Notes: generated by a model not told the origin, from the sequence alone. 64,000 nucleotides of DNA from Adineta vaga (GCA_021613535.1 CP075497.1:2294001-2358000); one strand, 5' to 3'; numbered from the stretch's first letter, positions 24,098 through 35,200 are shown. Program-made: numbers and translations.

Positions 24098-26150
24098 CTA
24101 TTCAACATTTAATTCCTGAAGTAAATTATTCGATGATTGTTGTAAGGAACACGTCGGTAATTGTGATAACTAAAACGAAACAAATATCAATTTGTATAAT
24201 GAAATTCAATCGAACTTACCCGCATTACAATTGATCTACAATTCATATCCTTAATAACCGTTCTGCACGTTGAATCTTTTGATAAACTCGTTAATGTTAT
24301 AATAATCGACTCCATTAACATATCATATCGATGATTTTCTTCGGAAAATTTCATTCGTTCTCGATCTAAATTCATGAGTAATTCAATTAATTTCTGAACT
24401 GCATTTTGTTCACATAAATATGGAATTATTGTTTGAGATAAAGATAAATTTCGAATTAAACTAACTGTTGCTTTGATGATTCCCCAATGTTCTTTGAAAT
24501 GTTTATCCCGAAATAATTTCACAATATTTCCAATTCCATAAGATTTTCGAATAATTTCTCGTGCTTCATTTTCCAACTCATGTCGAGCTGTTACATGTCG
24601 AAGTGTACATAACTAAACGAAATTCATTCGAAAATTTTTACTCAAAACAAATCCATAAGTTTTCAACATACTGCTGCTTCGATCAGATCATTATTTTCAT
24701 CCGAATTCATCATTAATTTCTGCATGACATTTTGTACACCGTGTAATTTAACAAATAAACTTTTATTTATTTGATTATCTGCCGTTAAATTACTGAGAAT
24801 TTCTAAGGAATTAATAACCGATTGACGATCATCACTTGATAACATTCCAGTCAATTGTTGAATTAATGAATCAATATCACGCTAAAATAGGACAACAATT
24901 GATGAAATACAAAAGTCTAATCGATTATATTTACCATTCGTGTTGCTTGATTGGAAATATTTCTCAATGTCGTAAGACAATTATGTCGAATTCGTATACT
25001 TTTCGTTGTACGTAAATGTTTTTCTAAGATACTCAATCCATTGAATTGTAAAATAATACGTTTATTCAATTCATTTCCTGATGAGACAATTGGAAGTAAT
25101 TTTGATATGGTTAATAATAATTTATCATATTTATTCGTATCAAAAATTGAGAGAAGACGTTGAACACATTCTTCATTATTTTGTATGCAATGTTTTGATT
25201 TAGTATTATAACTGGACATTTTTAGTAAACTATCAGTTACTAATGTTAATAATTTGTCATTCGGTCTATCTAACAGATGAATAAACTTGACTATACCATC
25301 GCATCGTTGAATTTCATCAGCTGCTTGATTTTGAAGAACAATTAAAAAATTATGTAATGTTGTTATCACATAATTGACAATATTATCTGCACAGCTGAAA
25401 ACAAAATGTTATGTAAGAAGAAAACGTTTATCGATTTAATTGTCTTACTCAAGAATTTGAAGTAATCGACCAATGCCTCCACAATCATAAATGACACGTA
25501 AACCTTCTTGTTGTTGAGAAAGTGAATGAAATAGATTAGCTAATGCATGTGTTATTTTACCATCACCAATATCTTTCGAAAATGTTTCCAATAAGCTGTT
25601 AATTAACTAAATGAAATAATTGACTTAAGAGAAAAGAGAAATAAAACAAAGATCTTACTTCTCGACTTTGAATGACTTCCGATCGACTTTCATTTCCTTC
25701 TTTTACTAATATATGTGTAAGTGAAACAGCCTCACGAACAATAACTGGATCATCTTCCATCAAGAGATTGAGTAATTCAGGTATAACTTGAGATGGTTCT
25801 GGTTTTCCTGGAACTGTTTGCATTTCTGTATATTGTGGATGTGTATTTTCAATATCATTAGGTAAACGAGAAGGCATTTGTTCATACATAGGTGCACCGG
25901 ATCCATGATGTGTCGGACCTGTACCTGTCGAATCAATGCTACGTAATGAAGCTGGACGAGAATTAAATCCTGAATCACGTTGTGATGTACAACCATTTGA
26001 CGTTGAATATGTATCATCAAGCCACATAGATGTATGACTATCAGAATTGATAGGTTGTAATTGATTTGAAAGGAGTGGATGTTGAGGATGATGTATATGA
26101 GGTTTACTAGGATGAGGAACTTGATGATGCATTGCTGGTGGATAATCCAT
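24098..26150 (-). CDS. Divergent, C-terminally short beta-catenin/armadillo paralog (degron-bearing)
   Basis: DSGFNS degron. ARM repeats with beta-catenin signatures (IPELLNLL, TTLHNFL, LRNISNQAT, LSNLT, LCTLRHVTARH, W.IIKATVSLIRNL). The last exon ends LQELNVE* at 24098. Confidence 0.85.
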
Positions 26151-26758
26151 GATAATTAACTAAGAAATAAAAGTGATATGAATTGTACAGTGTTCATTAT
26201 TCTTACCTAATCGTGTTTAATATGTATATATTCAATGAATGATGATGAACTCGAATGAGAAGGAGAGGAGAAGAGAAGAACGCTAGGCAACCGACACGGC
26301 GGCCGCTCTTTGTCCGTTTTTCAACGGATATTCATTTTTCGTTGTCTTTTATCAACCAATAAAAAACATTGCTTTGGTTACTTGTTACTATCGAATATCC
26401 TCTGTTCTACTTCTTACAAGTACATCTCTTACGTCTTCATACTATGATAGTTTTATTATATCCAGAACAAATAATCTCATATCTATGAACATTTACTCTT
26501 ACGAAGTAAACGAATGATTTGAATTTATGACGCCATCTATCAAAATTGAAATTTTGTACAATCATTGTTGAAGATAAAGAAAAAATTCCAATCGATAAAC
26601 AGTTCATTAAGCCACTTATAAGCTCTTTTTTATTGTTTATAGAAAAAGAAACAGTTTACTGTCTTTCAACTAGAAAAAAAGGACCGAACACGGTCACAGG
26701 GTTAGAAAACAGTACACTAGAATGAAAAGATGAGCTTTTTGGAAAACATTTTGGGTAA

Positions 26759-27885
26759 CTATTGTTTTGGCTTTTCACCATCTAATTCACCACAATCAGC
26801 AATTGTAATCTTCTTTTGAGTTTGACCGGATTGAGAACCTAACGCTTCAATTTTCTTCACTGTATCCATTCCATCGACAACTTCACCAAAGACAACCTTA
26901 ACAGAAAAAAAGAGATCAATGAAATGAACAAAACACAAAGATGTATTCGTACATGTTTGCCATCGAGCCAAGGTGTTGATTCTGTTGTAATAAAGAATTG
27001 AGAACCTAGAAAACCAACGATGAGAATTATCGAAGAGAATTCTGATCATTTTACCATTGGTATTCTTGCCCGAATTTGCCATTGAAAGTAAACCAGCTTT
27101 TTCATGTTTGATTTGAAAACTAGAATCGAATTTTAAAGTAAATATGATGTATATATTCAAATCAATTACTTTTCATCGGCAAATTTTTTTCCATAGATAC
27201 TAAAATAGATAAAATATAGATTTCGAAATATAAAAAGTTTACTCGTAGTGTTTGTTACCTATATCCACCTCTACCGTCACTAAAATACGAAAAGATTTTC
27301 TTTCGTGGGATTTTCAAATTGATTGATTTTACTTACTTTCGTTCGAAATCACCACCTTGTAGCATAAATTTAGGAATTACTCGATGAAAAGTTGAATTTT
27401 TATAACCAAATCCTTTATCTCCAGTACACAAAACTCGGAAATTCTCTAAAGAAACTCCATAGTCTTCATTTCCTTTGAACTTTCTTTCTCTTCATACCTG
27501 CAGTTTTTGGAACCACATCATTATAAAGCTAATATTTTTCAACGGAAAAAAAGTTTTTAAATCTAATCATTAAATTTTAATTCAACTAACTTGAAATGTA
27601 ATACGTCCAAGTGGCTTATTTTCCACATTTACATCACTAAATTTCCAAAAATAAAATAAAATATCATAGAAACAAAAAAGTAAATTACAAGAAACATTTT
27701 GATCGAGGAACATCTTTTTTCGATGATCCGCCACTGAATATTCCAAATGTTCGTTGTAAACCACATGATTTCTGTGTTAATAAAAAGAAAATCTCGTTTT
27801 CTTTTTCAATATAATAAATTCAATCAAATGATAAAACCTGAACATTTGATGTAAGAACAGTTCGAAGAAGTGTACGTGGAATCAT
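26759..27885 (-). CDS. Cyclophilin with predicted mitochondrial presequence (CypD/PPIF-like, multi-exon)
   Basis: Spliced N-terminus [16 protein letters not shown]|[15 protein letters not shown] is Arg/Ser/Thr-rich with no acidic residues. It is followed by [41 protein letters not shown]. Confidence 0.88.
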
Positions 27886-28207
27886 TCTTCTTATCAGTTT
27901 ACTTTTTTCAAAAAGATCTACAAAGACAATGGAAGCACAAAAAAAATTTTTTTATTCATTATCATTCGTCAAAATCATGCGAAAGGAGATTAAATAAAGA
28001 GACATTACACACGCGCACACGAAAAAAAAATTGACATATTCAGATCTCAAAAAAACAAACAAACAAAGAAACAGAAATGATAATAAATGGATTGATTAAA
28101 AGAGATATCTAATCTTCTGACATAAGTAGATCGATATATATGTATGTATAGATATGTATATATGCACACCAATCAAAGAAATTCTACAACTACATTTCAT
28201 TTCATTT

Positions 28208-31016
28208 TCACAAATCTGTATCGAACCAAGCAGCCATTTGAGGATTATTATGAGAAGGTGGAGGTGTTTGATGATGAATTGATGAACGAGGTGAACCTTG
28301 CATCATATCTCGATCGCCAACTAATACTTGATTATCCATTAAATTTCCAAGACCACTTCCACCAACACCTTCGGATGCATAATAATTCATTGTTGGAACA
28401 TCATGAAGTGGCGGTGGTGTTCCTCGATATGGATTCGAATACGAACCACCAGTTGAACCATTAGCCATGCTATAATGCTAAAAATAAACGTTTATTCTTA
28501 ACTAATGAAAACAAAACATTGAAAACTTACATTATTCGTCATATGTTCTTCACGATACAAAGCTGAGGTGACATCTTGTGACAAACGTTTTTTCATATCA
28601 TACGGTTTATCATCCGATAAACGAAATAAAATTGCTGCGGCATATGTAGCTTTAAACGAAAGATATAGTATTATAATTGATTTCGAAAGAGAATTTTGTT
28701 TAACTCACCAACACCTTCATCGTTCGATTTAAGTAATTCAGTTAATTTTGGTGTACAATTCTGTTTCTCAACAATTTCTGCACATAAACGATCATTCACA
28801 AGTTCACATAAAACACCAGTAGCTGCACGTTGAATTGGAACGCTCGATGGTGGATAGAGAAGCTAAACATATAATAATAATTAAACAGAAGAGAGAAAAA
28901 ACAAACGAATTCATACTCGAACAAATAATGGAATACAATCTAAATCACGTATAATCATTCGATTTTGTTGATCTTTTGCAATAATATGTAGAGCACTAAC
29001 ACATGCTTCAAGTATATCATCCATTCGAATATAATTATCAATTAATTCAACATTTGGTTGTTGTCTTTGTAATTCTTGATGACTTCGAACAAGTAATTGT
29101 GCTAATTTTTGTATTGAACCTGTTTCACGTAAAATTGGAAGATTATTTGGTGATAAAGCTAAATTTCGAATTAAACTTATTGTTGATTTAATAATTGGCC
29201 ATGAATATAATGATGGATTAAGTAATTCAATAATTGGTAAAAGACCATTGACATTTCGAACTGTATCTTGTGCTTCACCAGCATGAGAATGTCGAGATGT
29301 AATATGTCTTAATGCACAAATCGCTGGTTCTAAAATTTCTTCTTTATCATGACCTTGTACAATAGCATTGATCAAAGCATGAACACCATTCGATTGAACA
29401 ACAGCCATTTTATTATATTGATTATTACATGTTAAATTGGATATGATACCAACTGCACATGAGACAGTAATTAGATCATTTGTTTGTAATAATTCAATGA
29501 GTAAACGAAGTAATGAATCGAGATTTTCCTAGAAGGAAAATTCAAAAAAGAATTATTGAAATTCAGAAAAATTTGGTTTTCTACGAACTAATTTAACAGC
29601 TTGATCAGAAAGATTTCGAAGAATTTGTAAACAATTTTGTTGAATACGTAAACTTATCGGTTGATATAATTGTTTTTCAAGTATTTGAACCGCATTTTTC
29701 GATATCATCACTATTTTTATCGAAGGACTAACAGATAAAACTCGAAGAAGACGTGTTGTTGTCCATAAAAGTTTTTCATAATCAGTTAATTCTAATATAC
29801 GTAACAATTGTTGTGGACCATTGCTTGATTCAATAATAATCTAAATACAGAGTTGATTTTATTCAAAAATTTGTCTTCACAATAACATTTATTTTAGGGC
29901 GTCAAATGCGTCACCAAAAGAATATAACAAGAAGCTGTTTTTTCATTGTCTATGATGCAAAACTTACCAAAGAAATGAGAAAAATATCTTCTGAATGAAG
30001 GAAATGAAACAATCTCAAAATTAAAGATAGATCCGTTCTTATTTACCTTTACTTCTTCATTATTAAACGCTAACATATGAAGACAATCAGTAAGTATAGC
30101 TAAGAATTTCGGATTGGAACTATTCAATAATCCAACCATTTTTTGACAACCACCACAACGAAGAATTTCTAATTTCGCGTGTTCTAAATGTAATAATAGA
30201 TTGTGTAATGTTGATAGAGAATAATTAACAACTGATTCAATTGATGAACTAAAGAGAAAAAAAGGCATGAAATTTTGAGATAATGAACATGAAATACTTT
30301 ACTCTAAAAGTCGAACAAGAATTGGAATAACACCACCTTTGAAGAGAAGAAGAAGGCCTTGTTTTTGTTGAGATAAACAATGAAAAACTCCGGCAATTCC
30401 ACGACGTGTTTCATCATTAGCGCGTGGATTTGATATTGCTTGAATTAATGCTTGAATCATTTGTGGTGTTGTTAAAGCTAATCGACTTGCTTCTTTCTTA
30501 GCTAATGTATGTAATATTAATGCAGCTTGTCCTGAAACAATTGGATCATCATCATTCAATAAACGAATCAATTCCGGAAGAGCCTTTTCCGTTATATCAG
30601 CATCTTCTTTATAATTTATAATATCAATAACAGCATTTTTTAATAATTGAGATGGTTCAGAAAGTTTCTGAACTGCTGTAGGTTGACCATTGACAAATTG
30701 AGGTGAAGCCGTAGGCATTGATATACCACCAGATACGCCATCTTCGAGTGTTTCAGGAAAGATTGCTGCACGAATACGTTGAGCACGTGTTGAACTTAAT
30801 TGAACATTCATCGATTCGATATGTTCCTGTATCATATAATCATCCATATTACCATTACGAACATGAGAACGATGACCATGTCCATTCATTCCATTTGATA
30901 TTGGATAAGTTTCGTAATCCATAAGGCAAAACTAAGATCAGAGTAAAGTAAAATATCAATCGAGAATGTATGTATGTATGTATTGTACGAGTTTAAACTG
31001 TATGCTGATTCGCCAT
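28208..31016 (-). CDS. CTNNB1: Beta-catenin/armadillo (degron-less, full ARM array and C-terminal tail)
   Basis: [78 protein letters not shown] and C-terminal AAWFDTDL. A probable first exon MANQHT starts at 31016. Confidence 0.93.
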
Positions 31017-31186
31017 ATTGTTTATTTGATAGTACATTGAACAAGTTAAACAAATAAACAGAACAGAATGGACAAATAATTGTTACAAAGAATATTTCTA
31101 AAAATATTCAATTTTTAGTTATTAATTTAAAAAAAAATTAATAAAAAATACATTGTAGAACAATAGTATGAATATCAATTGTGACA

Positions 31187-31197
31187 ATAGATGGCGC
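31187..31197. promoter_or_regulatory. CGCCATCTAT motif (CTCF/YY1-like) upstream of the degron-less beta-catenin
   Basis: ATAGATGGCGC ~170 bp upstream of the start codon. The same 10-mer occurs at 26531-26540 and 40977-40986, also upstream of genes. Confidence 0.45.
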
Positions 31198-32293
31198 ACA
31201 TCGATACAATACCATCGAACTGACCTATTCATGAGAGAGAGAGAAGCTCATAAGAACGATCGATAATAGTGTTCATTATTTCTAGTTTAATGTTATAAAT
31301 GTAGAACATATTACAAAAGAATAGGACTTCATTTTTTCATGGTGATTCGAAGGACATTTTGTGTAAATACGAATGAACTATTCTTTGTAAATATGTCAAG
31401 AATAATTTCTTAATAAAAGCTTATTGATTGTCTTACGGTTGAAAAATCTTTGAATTTGATTATCATAATATCATCATGAATAACTGTCAATAAGTTATAT
31501 AATGCAAAAAGAAAAGAACGATCGATTTTTAACGAAAGTTTTCTTTTGTTTATCTTGTCAATTTTAAATCAAATATTGATTTCATTAATTTCATTTGGAA
31601 AGTATTTATTCTGATAGAATAGCCTTCATAAGTAAAGTAATCACAAAATGGTAATGAACAATACAGTAAATATATATACTTCTACTTCAAACAACCAGAT
31701 AGAATAGAGATGAAATCAAATGTTATTTTATGTCTTCTCCTTTTTTTTCCACACTAGTGGTATTGAATCGTCAAGAAATGAACCATTTTTTCGTCTAATA
31801 TAGAAATTTTATTATATAATTGCTAATCTATCATTAACCGAACAATAATGTAAAACAAATTGAATAAAAGATTTTTTAAAAAATCAAATAAGAAACAAAA
31901 AGGGACAAAAGACACATGTATATAACTTGTTTTTTCGAAGAAAATAAAAACAAAGAAACATCCGATTGACTTCAATTCATCATCTTTCATACAAACACTG
32001 TCAAATACTCGTTCAAATGTCGACTGTGAATGTTTCTCGCATTAGATTGTTGCTGTAATAAGGCTGATGCTGATGTTCCAAGATCGGTTCCAGCACCACT
32101 GATCGATGACTGCAATGAAAAAAGATTTTAGTATAAATGAAAATTCTAGCTTTTTGTTTCCGTTGTATTATTTTCATGCAATTGATTAATAAAATAATAA
32201 GCAAATAATTAAGAAACAGCAAATCTATTTATATATATATATTATATTAGTTATACAAGAAATAAAACGAGTAATGAAAAAAAAAAACTAAAT

Positions 32294-35200
32294 TTAGCAA
32301 CGAGTAGAAGCAATCGGACTGAATCGAGCATTATAATAGCAAAAGCTGTTGTCTCCTACTTCAACTGTTGCTGCTGCTGCTGTAGTTGTTGTTTGCTGTC
32401 GACAAGCATCAGCAATGGTTGTCGCACCTGAGGAGGAGGGAGAAGAGGAAGATAAGAATAAGTGAGTTGACGTGCTCGATAATAATGTATAACAATGAGA
32501 ACAAATATGATTAATAAAATGATTAGAATTAGAACAAGCAAGACAAGCATTAGTTAGTGGTTGAATTTTATTGTCTACCTCATGTGATTCTGATATAATA
32601 TCCATTGCATCTTCCGATATAACAGGACGTCGAAGATCAAGTGAACGTTTTTGTTGTTGATTATTCACCCATTGCTTATCTTCATTAATTGTATCCAAAT
32701 GTGGATGTTCAGTTGATTCACGAATAGTTGTACGAAATGAACCTGTATTCGTTGTTGCTGGTCGATCAGAAATATCGGATGAACTTGATGAACTACTTGT
32801 CGAACGATTATCATATGTTGATAATAATTCTTCAATTGTTGTATTTATTGGTGGTTCACTAACTTTATAATGTCCCGAAAGAAGACGATTATTAATTGGT
32901 GATGATGTTGTTTGTTCACTACTATTCGATGAATCATCATCACGAACACCCAAAGCATACGGTGATGATTCAATAATTGGAGTTTTAGATTTTAAAAATG
33001 ATATACCTTGTGCTGAAGAATTTTGATGGATCTTAAAAAATGGTGGAACACGATGTTTAGCACGTTGAATATTGTAATAAATAATAATAAATAATATTGC
33101 AATGATAATCAGTATAAATGCACTAACACTTGCAATAATCGCGTAAGTTGTACTATTATCCATTGATCGAGATGTAGCAATTGTGGATGTTGGATATATA
33201 TTCGATTGAAAATTGCGAATGGTTACAATAACATCAGTTGAAAGATTCATTTTTAATGTTGAACAAATTTGTTGAATAAGAATTTGAAATTGATAAGCTT
33301 CTTGAATAGATGATGTTGAGGTATTTAACCATGTTAAATTACCTGTTGAAGAGATAGAGAATAAAGAATTGAATGAACCAAGAATTGTATATTGCACTTG
33401 ACAACGATTATCTTTGATAACCTAAAGAAGAAACAAGAAATACTTGCGAGAAATGGATTCTTTTCTTACTTGAATTGTACCAATTGTTGATAAAGAATTA
33501 TTAAGTGGATAATCTGCTGAGAATAGATAAGAATTCATGAGAAATGATAAAGGTGTATAGAGATAAATATGAAGATCTGTTTGATCTGACTAAAATTTTG
33601 AAGAAAAAGAAAACACAAATCTATTTTCTAATTGTTTATCTATCAAAATTCACTTACATATTGACCATCAGATACATTCAAAACACAGACACAAGTTTGA
33701 CATACAGGAAGATTTTGAAAAGTCGTTAATTGTAATTGAAATAGACGAAGACTATTGAATAAAACGAAATATATTCGTAATTCTTCTCTCTCAAATGATT
33801 TTACCTAGTTTTTATAATTTGCAAATGAAGTAACGATGAATCACATGAATAACTAAACGCTAATCTCGGATTCTATCATAGAAAACACATAGTACAATTT
33901 ATCTAATTGATCATATTCTTCTTACCGCATCCATATCACTAACAGTTCCATTAATTGTTGGTATTTGATCGAGATTATTCATTGTATATCCAACCAAAAT
34001 ATACGGTGAAGAAAGAAATCGTGGTGGATAAAGATTCAATTCATAAATATTAACATGTAAGACAGCTGTTGTAAATTTAGTTGGATCATTTTCTTGTTCA
34101 GCCTAAATGATAAATGTCAATAACAATCAATCTTATTCATTTCATTTTACTTTAATCAAAAGATCAAATTGTCTTGTAGAATCTAAATTTGTTTGTAGAG
34201 TTATAACACCTGTATATTTATCAATTGTAAAATACATATCTAAAACAAAAACTATAGATTTTTAAAACATTTGATCTTCGTTCAGATTTACTTGATGTTG
34301 AAAATGAATAAATGATGGTTGTATTGATTCCAAGATCTTGATCATAAGCAAAGATACGTCCTTCTTTTGGTACGACTTCATATCCCTATTAGACAAAAAA
34401 GCAGAATAAATCGTTCTTCTCGTGTCAAATATGCAATTAAAATCAACTATACAATTGTCGTATCGATGGAAATATTCAAATGATATGATGTTGAAATTCG
34501 AAATTTTGGATCTAAATTATCTACATCAATTAAATGTATTGAGACAATCGTTTGTGAAGATAATGATGGATTTCCATTATCCTATTTAATAAAACAAAAA
34601 AAAATGTTTCTTCATAAAGAAATCTTCTTGGCAAATCGAATTCATTTACTTGGGCGACGATGATTAAATTAAAATTTGATATCATTGAATTATAATCAAG
34701 TGTTCGAACTAATACCAGACTTGCATTTGTAGAGCTTACCAATCGAAAATATGACTAACAACAAACAATCAATAAAATCATCAAGAAATTTTCTTAAGAA
34801 ATTCTCTTACAGCATAGGACGAGAGACTATTTTGTAAAGAATAGGAAAAGGTACCCGATGTACCTGAATCAGCATCTGATGCTGAAATTGCTGTTGATAC
34901 AATGATATTAGTTGGTGTGTTTTCAGTAAGATTTAAATGATAGATCGATTTAGAGAATACTGGAGGATTATCATTAACATCAATTAGATCAAGTTGAAAA
35001 TCGATATCATGAATCGATTTATCCGATAAAACTGTACATTCAACAATAAAACGAAAAGGATTGGGAAAACCATTCGATGTCCACCATTCATAATCCAAAG
35101 CTAAAAGAAAATCGATAGAAGATTTTCAAAAAAAAAGGAACATTTTACCAGAACGTAAATAAAGATCAGTAAAATTTAAAGTAAAATAATCCGTTCCATT

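Follow-up and report, generated by a model that had tools for sequence, protein, structure and literature searches.

Two neighboring beta-catenin genes with complementary modules in Adineta vaga, a bdelloid rotifer

A 64,000-nucleotide stretch of Adineta vaga DNA (GCA_021613535.1 CP075497.1:2294001-2358000; the window), part of chromosome 6 in the six-contig, 100.8-Mb assembly, carries two neighboring beta-catenin genes on its minus strand. The modules that other animals unite in one beta-catenin are divided between them. Paralog A (26150-24098) encodes a phosphodegron but neither the alpha-catenin-binding helix nor the C-terminal tail, and paralog B (coding sequence 30922-28208) encodes the helix and the tail but no degron. 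The initial annotation, made from the sequence alone, had proposed such complementary modules, and they are real: RNA contigs, the ohnologs on chromosome 3, and sequences from three bdelloid genera all bear them out. Probably the pair arose by duplication followed by complementary loss, which would leave B as the junctional form and A as the form under the control of the destruction complex.

Complementary modules on two neighboring genes

Modules were mapped by alignment to Xenopus beta-catenin (781 amino acids; P0269), the numbering of which was taken as equal to that of the human protein. Paralog A encodes 594 amino acids in six exons (26150-25659, 25606-25449, 25394-24935, 24881-24672, 24612-24220, and 24169-24098, minus strand), separated by GT..AG introns of 50 to 59 nucleotides, and its joined translation is identical to the A. 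vaga protein I4U23_027976 at NCBI (P0157). The phosphodegron block DSGFNSRPASLRS (25938-25976, minus strand; residues 59-71) aligns to D32-S45 of Xenopus and human beta-catenin, with DSGFNS (residues 59-64) opposite D32-S37 of the Xenopus protein. The serines that follow the start of the degron are S60, S64, S68, and then S71, a spacing one step shorter than in vertebrates. Farther along, EPSQ runs straight into VIPELL. At this junction (EPSQ followed by V; 25785-25799, minus strand), which lies within one uninterrupted exon, 21 residues of the alpha-catenin-binding helix are gone (~131-152 of the Xenopus protein, with the register ambiguous by one residue). The RAAMFPE block is absent as well. 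The last exon with its stop codon (24169-24098, minus strand) ends at a residue that aligns to Xenopus position 624, which, from crystal-structure work, we take to be the boundary between Armadillo (ARM) repeats ARM11 and ARM12. A therefore has no tail at all and lacks both ARM12 and helix C (669-684 of the Xenopus protein); Y654 is missing too. The Armadillo core is present (Pfam Arm match, ligand-groove residues kept), but as ARM1-11 only.

Paralog B encodes 742 amino acids in seven exons (30922-30303, 30248-30047, 29840-29589, 29528-28917, 28862-28709, 28649-28531, and 28477-28208, minus strand); the last acceptor was set to 28477 for frame, and RNA joints agree. It is 92% identical to the Adineta steineri protein P0160 and 48% identical to Xenopus beta-catenin over 729 columns, nearly the full length. 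Neither a motif scan nor the alignment revealed any [DES]SGxx[ST] before ARM1, including the 50 residues ahead of RAAIFPE (residues 1-50; 30773-30922, minus strand), and the transcript ends described below add no further N-terminal sequence. The RAAIFPE block (residues 51-57; 30752-30772, minus strand) aligns to RAAMFPE at residues 95-101 of Xenopus beta-catenin. The alpha-catenin-binding helix segment, which follows EPSQ (residues 93-114; 30581-30646, minus strand), aligns to Xenopus 131-152 and includes the tyrosine equivalent to Y142. Exons 6 and 7 (28208-28649, minus strand) encode the end of ARM12, helix C, the tail, and the stop codon, in alignment with Xenopus residues 640-781, and WFDTDL stands at the C-terminal end (28211-28228). 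Thus, by sequence alignment only, B has the alpha-catenin helix of the family (human ~120-151), 12 ARM repeats (Pfam Arm matches on the exons), a conserved helix C, and the C-terminal DTDL motif. For A, the gene models and alignments agree with the initial annotation in the degron, the EPSQ-VIPELL junction, the missing RAAMFPE region, and the end in the last ARM repeats; for B, they agree with it in RAAIFPE, the segment of the alpha-catenin helix, the tail ending in WFDTDL, and the absence of an N-terminal DSGxxS.

The genome was searched for ARM regions with a B exon and canonical beta-catenin as queries. Only five ARM loci were found, of which chromosome 6 carries B and A, chromosome 3 another pair, and chromosome 2 a single locus. 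Neither the second A/B pair nor the chromosome 2 paralog figured in the initial annotation. The ohnologous chromosome 3 repeats the whole block (upstream gene, B', cyclophilin, A', cyclophilin). In B' (P0014, 703 amino acids), RAAIFPE and the helix are present, the degron is absent, and the tail ends in WLDSDL; A' has an identical degron block and the same deletion as A and ends shortly after the ARM11 position. The chromosome 2 paralog (L011:4554-6462; G000 chromosome 2, ~13337554-13339462), modeled with seven exons and 520 amino acids, is a very divergent ARM core with no degron, alpha-catenin helix, or tail, and no ohnolog of it was found on chromosome 5. Genome-wide, the degron-type N terminus matches only A and A', and the RAAMFPE-plus-helix region matches only B and B'. 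A further copy with all modules was looked for, and none of the five ARM loci is such a copy; none joins even the degron and the tail.

Both architectures occur in Adineta, Rotaria, and Didymodactylos. A-type proteins of 552 to 648 amino acids are found in A. steineri, A. ricciae, several Rotaria species, and Didymodactylos carnosus, and also as uninterrupted open reading frames (ORFs) on mRNA-length contigs of other bdelloids, with ends at the same position or shortly after. Those of Adineta and Rotaria form two classes by length, corresponding to the two ohnologs. Every complete A-type sequence has DSGFNS, or DSGIHS in Didymodactylos; P0134, an N-terminally shorter Didymodactylos entry, has no degron motif. 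All A-type proteins lack the helix through the same deletion, and none has a tail. Among 25 bdelloid A-types the degron is a conservation island, with a mean identity of 0.82 versus 0.45 to 0.5 in the flanking N-terminal segments; the block is as conserved as the ARM core, and the remaining N terminus is variable. Ten strain or allele variants were seen in A exon 1 (7 synonymous, 3 nonsynonymous), none of them in the degron. The B-types of Adineta and Rotaria are 90 to 92% identical to B and likewise lack the degron. A partial B-type from D. carnosus (P0182) reads DSDIHSTATS where canonical proteins have DSGIHSGATT, a degron relic in which the glycine has been replaced, and appears to be an intermediate in the loss seen in Adineta and Rotaria.

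Predicted functions of the two proteins

The ligand groove is kept in both proteins. K312, K435, H260, K292, R386, N387, N426, R469, H470, and K508 are present in A and in B, as are L156, L159, D164, and L178 of ARM1; both proteins have N in place of F253 and have lost W383. We take K312 and K435 to be the charged buttons for TCF, cadherin, and APC, and the four ARM1 residues bind BCL9 in other animals. Residue roles come in part from published work (PMC5643146). Partner genes are encoded in the genome: beta-TrCP D-domains at four loci, cadherin cytoplasmic domains at three loci, and alpha-catenin.

The history that we consider probable begins with the tandem duplication of a unit of beta-catenin plus cyclophilin on the bdelloid stem, before the bdelloid genome duplication, after which the two beta-catenin copies would have lost complementary modules. 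The slow-evolving B would have kept the parts of the link from cadherin to alpha-catenin, namely, RAAIFPE, the helix, 12 ARM repeats, helix C, and the PDZ-type tail. Having no GSK3/CK1/beta-TrCP phosphodegron, B would not be destroyed by that route. The fast-evolving A would have kept the degron and the ARM3-10 ligand groove and lost the alpha-catenin helix, ARM12, helix C, and the tail. It would be unable to bridge to alpha-catenin and would be the sole form with a level that the destruction complex can set. We infer that B can bridge cadherin and alpha-catenin and cannot be marked through the classical degron, and that A can be so marked and can occupy TCF-type ligands but cannot recruit alpha-catenin. 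B would then be the junctional form and A a Wnt-controlled TCF partner. Set beside the observed architectures, expression, conservation, timing, and genome census of the pair, a functional split between A and B is plausible.

Several observations weigh against this interpretation. No residue of A lies at the canonical S45 distance, and the priming logic and kinase relay are hence putative. A lacks helix C and the tail, which are needed for full transactivation. B, which keeps all TCF-contact residues and the tail, could also be a signaling protein. Six-frame searches gave no Pfam matches to the TCF N-terminal domain, the Axin beta-catenin-binding motif, or BCL9, although they were uninformative in that control genomes gave none either. 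In planarians, tail-less forms inhibit signaling in vitro (PMC5643146). The initial annotation had read the pair as an independent subfunctionalization in which A is the only Wnt-regulated form. The partition of modules stands. The view of A as a classical Wnt transducer is weakened, because ARM12, helix C, and the C-terminal transactivation region are absent; without a transactivation tail, A resembles planarian beta-catenin-3 rather than a classical transducer.

It is possible, and we propose it only tentatively, that Wnt-controlled stability (on A) and the classical activation tail (on B) reside on separate polypeptides and that canonical Wnt output is wired differently in bdelloids. Since no bdelloid beta-catenin unites the degron with the transactivation region, Wnt output would have to be wired otherwise, either through tail-independent activation via A or through an inverted logic in which Wnt-stabilized A competes with constitutive B at TCF. 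Unconventional beta-catenin control may even be a wider rotifer trait, in that monogononts also lack the degron.

The inverted logic amounts to an alternative account of the pair, in which A is a Wnt-stabilized competitive inhibitor that occupies TCF without activation, in the manner of planarian beta-catenin-3/4, and B is both the junctional protein and the sole transactivator. We think this rather unlikely. Tail-less Drosophila Armadillo retains some signaling at high levels, which counts against a purely inhibitory A. The account draws on planarian Smed-beta-catenin-3, a TCF- and beta-TrCP-binding protein that inhibits beta-catenin-1 in reporter assays and shares its architecture with A (degron present; alpha-catenin site and C-terminal transactivation domain absent) (PMC5643146). 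It also fits the retention of TCF-contact residues in A and of helix C and the tail in B. However, planarians retain a degron-plus-tail form, beta-catenin-1, as the target of inhibition. Bdelloids have none, so Wnt would only repress, and B would be left without a known means of regulation.

Origin, age, and expression of the pair

On the minus strand the genes run in the order B, cyclophilin, A, second cyclophilin. Nine RNA joints support the cyclophilin between B and A (~27876-26685, ends approximate, minus strand), where contig depth is also high. Its counterpart downstream of A (~23767-22975, ends approximate, minus strand) was recognized by its tblastx collinearity with 26789-27641. The two are collinear exon by exon, with 50 to 86% identity per exon, and therefore a unit of beta-catenin plus cyclophilin was duplicated in tandem. 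In A. steineri, an 853-amino-acid protein (P0164) is annotated as a B-type beta-catenin fused to a peptidyl-prolyl isomerase. Most likely this gene model reads through from one conserved neighbor into the other, and the synteny of beta-catenin and cyclophilin thus holds in A. steineri.

A maximum-likelihood tree (LG+C20 with posterior mean site frequencies [PMSF], 37 proteins, 646 columns) recovered a bdelloid clade in which the B-types are sister to the A-types, the latter including the chromosome 2 gene (support 100/97). The sister of the bdelloid clade is a protein of the acanthocephalan Pomphorhynchus laevis (P0017; 98/95), which has DSGINS and the alpha-catenin helix in one chain, and the next clade out is monogonont, recognized via Brachionus calyciflorus P0297. 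The tree thus places the duplication on the bdelloid stem lineage. An approximately unbiased (AU) test rejected a grouping of B-types with Pomphorhynchus to the exclusion of A (log-likelihood difference 11.1, p = 0.017), a result tempered by two points that tell against our interpretation, namely, that the tested clade was named after the tree was seen and that A is a long branch (stem 0.93). The chromosome 2 gene joins the A-types on a very long branch. It shares two introns with A that are absent in B and one with B that is absent in A, positions that fit the tree. Because A and B both occur in Didymodactylos and the block stands on both ohnologous chromosomes, the tandem duplication predates crown bdelloids. 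The presence of the four-gene block on both ohnologs likewise means that it precedes the genome duplication shared by Adineta and Rotaria.

An older duplication was also considered. In that case A would be orthologous to degron-bearing, helix-less forms of other animals, such as flatworm beta-catenin-1 or putative monogonont copies, and long branches or gene conversion between the neighbors would have misled the tree. Degron-bearing, helix-less paralogs do exist in flatworms, a centipede, and mites; a degron-bearing partner would make sense in monogononts, whose beta-catenins lack the degron; and the stem of A is long, as noted above. Even so, an origin before the bdelloids is improbable. A groups with bdelloid B and not with the flatworm, centipede, or mite forms, the AU test speaks against uniting B with the acanthocephalan protein without A, and the Didymodactylos B-type carries the degron relic. 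Furthermore, an exhaustive profile search with an A exon detected no A-like protein outside bdelloids above the ordinary beta-catenin background. In a wider quick tree, in which long branches are present, the degron-bearing, helix-less flatworm forms group together and apart from bdelloid A, the corresponding centipede form groups with the canonical gene of its own species, and the mite forms fall outside the rotifers, with no settled position among protostomes; bdelloid A is joined by none of these. This separation of bdelloid A and B from the flatworm forms upholds the independent origin that had been suggested at the outset, and in the trees the bdelloid split appears independent of both the flatworm and the nematode cases.

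Second copies with a degron but no RAAMFPE/helix region were noted in Strigamia maritima (P0042), in Panonychus citri (P0059), and in P0049, P0019, and P0089, which are probably mite proteins. Such centipede and mite copies indicate that the same module loss happened several times in arthropods. P0049 (degron bearing, C-terminally truncated) and P0019 (degron bearing, not truncated) were candidates for monogonont A-like proteins and were rejected: among named sequences their best relatives are those of chelicerates (a mite, a scorpion, a horseshoe crab), and neither groups with rotifers, which makes mites their probable source. The monogonont beta-catenins themselves (P0297 and ~15 relatives, P0166, P0167, and P0294-P0310) have no DSGxxS before RAAMFPE and keep the helix and the WFDTDL end; no degron-bearing partner was found for them.

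Expression and gene structure were evaluated with RNA contigs, rather than raw reads, from four runs of three studies placed on 25400-31399, the depth of which cannot rank expression. The runs behave as cDNA, with introns skipped and depths of 0 to 1.6 in intergenic bins. All six B introns were seen as contig joints in all four runs, including 28477|28531 and 28649|28709. The B contigs of all four runs end at 30966-30976, ~45 to 55 nucleotides upstream of the ATG at 30922. Three of the four runs have a depth of 0 across 31000-31399; in the fourth (X5), the 31000-31199 bin reaches 0.84. In frame with the ATG, a TAG stands 12 nucleotides upstream of it. The contig ends and this stop codon therefore do not support the start of B at 31016 given in the initial annotation, and its module content is unchanged. 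An upstream exon supplying B with a DSGxxS would have overturned the complementarity, and no contig in the four runs contains such an exon or a joint leading to one. Paralog A is expressed: contigs cover 25659-26171 and pass through the EPSQ-V junction with neither a break nor a joint, and from 25449 a loose end leads on into A exon 3.

These data make it very improbable that annotation or assembly is at fault and that missed exons restore the degron of B or the helix and tail of A. Such an error might hide in the use of contigs in place of reads, or in the part of A below 25400, which is outside the stretch covered. However, the B transcripts stop just upstream of the ATG behind an in-frame stop in four runs from three studies, and the junction of A is inside a contiguous exon. 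Only ~330 nucleotides separate the A stop codon from the ATG of the next gene, and these contain no beta-catenin-like frame. The uninterrupted ORFs of other bdelloids end alike, and the chromosome 3 ohnologs agree. That A is a decaying duplicate without function, as might be supposed from its truncation and its rate of change (~2.5 times that of B; A. vaga/A. steineri identity of 80% versus 92%), is scarcely credible when both ohnologs, and more than 20 sequences in three genera, keep an unbroken frame, its ends and degron are conserved, it is expressed, and its strain variants are mostly synonymous.

Further features of the locus were noted. An ORF at 31987-32115 (...SISGAGTDLGT...) was considered as a hidden degron exon of B and rejected; the conserved frame there is a different one and belongs to the final exon of the gene upstream, the ending of which is ...TFTVDI here and ...MFSVEI in the chromosome 3 counterpart, and no RNA contig joins this ORF to B. 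The product of that upstream gene (32013-33397, minus strand; last exon ending at ~32013) is rich in serine, has one likely membrane span, and matches no Pfam family; the gene has a syntenic counterpart on chromosome 3 (L009:2131-3459). The loose end that all four runs show at 30966 was likewise discarded as a B exon. It maps to chromosome 1 beside a (CATA)n run, and because its contig also touches cyclophilin, we read it as a repeat or paralog join. At 30960, within the 5' untranslated region of B, one run (X3) carries a six-base insertion, CGAGAA, which probably reflects a difference between alleles or strains. Upstream of the ATG, both A (26151-26165) and B (30923-30935) have cttag followed by ~10 bases, with the TAG in frame 12 nucleotides before the start codon; a shared relic and a trans-splice acceptor are candidate explanations.

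Relation to other divided beta-catenins

Beta-catenin is the textbook case of one protein with two jobs, adhesion and Wnt signaling. In the canonical bilaterian beta-catenin/Armadillo, exemplified by Xenopus P0269 and Chaetopterus P0236, the degron, the helix, 12 ARM repeats, helix C, and the tail are in one protein. In bdelloids, by contrast, one gene carries the degron and its neighbor the helix, ARM12, helix C, and the tail, with the ARM ligand-groove residues kept, as in the canonical protein, in both. The closest outgroup, P. laevis P0017, shares the LPEL..LLNDDD signature with B but, unlike the bdelloid proteins, has DSGINS and the alpha-catenin helix together; its own tail is shortened.

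A division of beta-catenin roles among paralogs is already known from C. elegans and planarians. In C. elegans, adhesion and signaling are divided among the lineage-specific paralogs HMP-2, BAR-1, WRM-1, and SYS-1. By description, these four very divergent proteins, with no tandem pair and another module partition, are set apart from the bdelloid case. The planarian Smed-beta-catenin-1 to -4 are closer in kind, as duplicates there also separate adhesion from Wnt functions (PMC5643146 and work cited there). In planarians, the form that serves adhesion combines the alpha-catenin site with a PDZ tail and does not bind beta-TrCP (PMC5643146). Bdelloid B and B' have the same combination, a predicted alpha-catenin site and a PDZ-type tail, with no degron. 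Planarian beta-catenin-3 is, like bdelloid A, tail-less, degron bearing, and without the alpha-catenin site; it binds TCF and beta-TrCP and inhibits signaling in vitro (PMC5643146). The resemblance ends at the signaling form: planarian beta-catenin-1 unites the degron and the transactivation tail without the alpha-catenin site, and the bdelloid genome has no such copy. A further difference concerns TCF, which planarian beta-catenin-2 reportedly does not bind, whereas helix C and every TCF-contact residue are retained in bdelloid B. The quick tree, in which long branches are present, did not recover a common origin of the bdelloid and flatworm duplications.

What is new is the lineage, a cut that leaves no protein uniting the degron and the tail, the relic intermediate in Didymodactylos, and the retention of the split in duplicate. 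No publication on rotifer beta-catenin paralogs was found in the literature searched, which did not cover subscription journals.

The natural splits of nematodes and planarians have been used to learn which beta-catenin module does what. Bdelloids provide a further independent split, in which the degron has been parted both from the transactivation tail and from the alpha-catenin site and which these animals have retained in duplicate from a time before their genome duplication. Should the functional interpretation of A and B be true, the pair would offer a direct test of whether the C-terminal tail is needed for Wnt output and of how a beta-catenin without a degron stays out of the nucleus, in an animal, A. 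vaga, that grows in laboratory culture and the genome of which is assembled to chromosome level.

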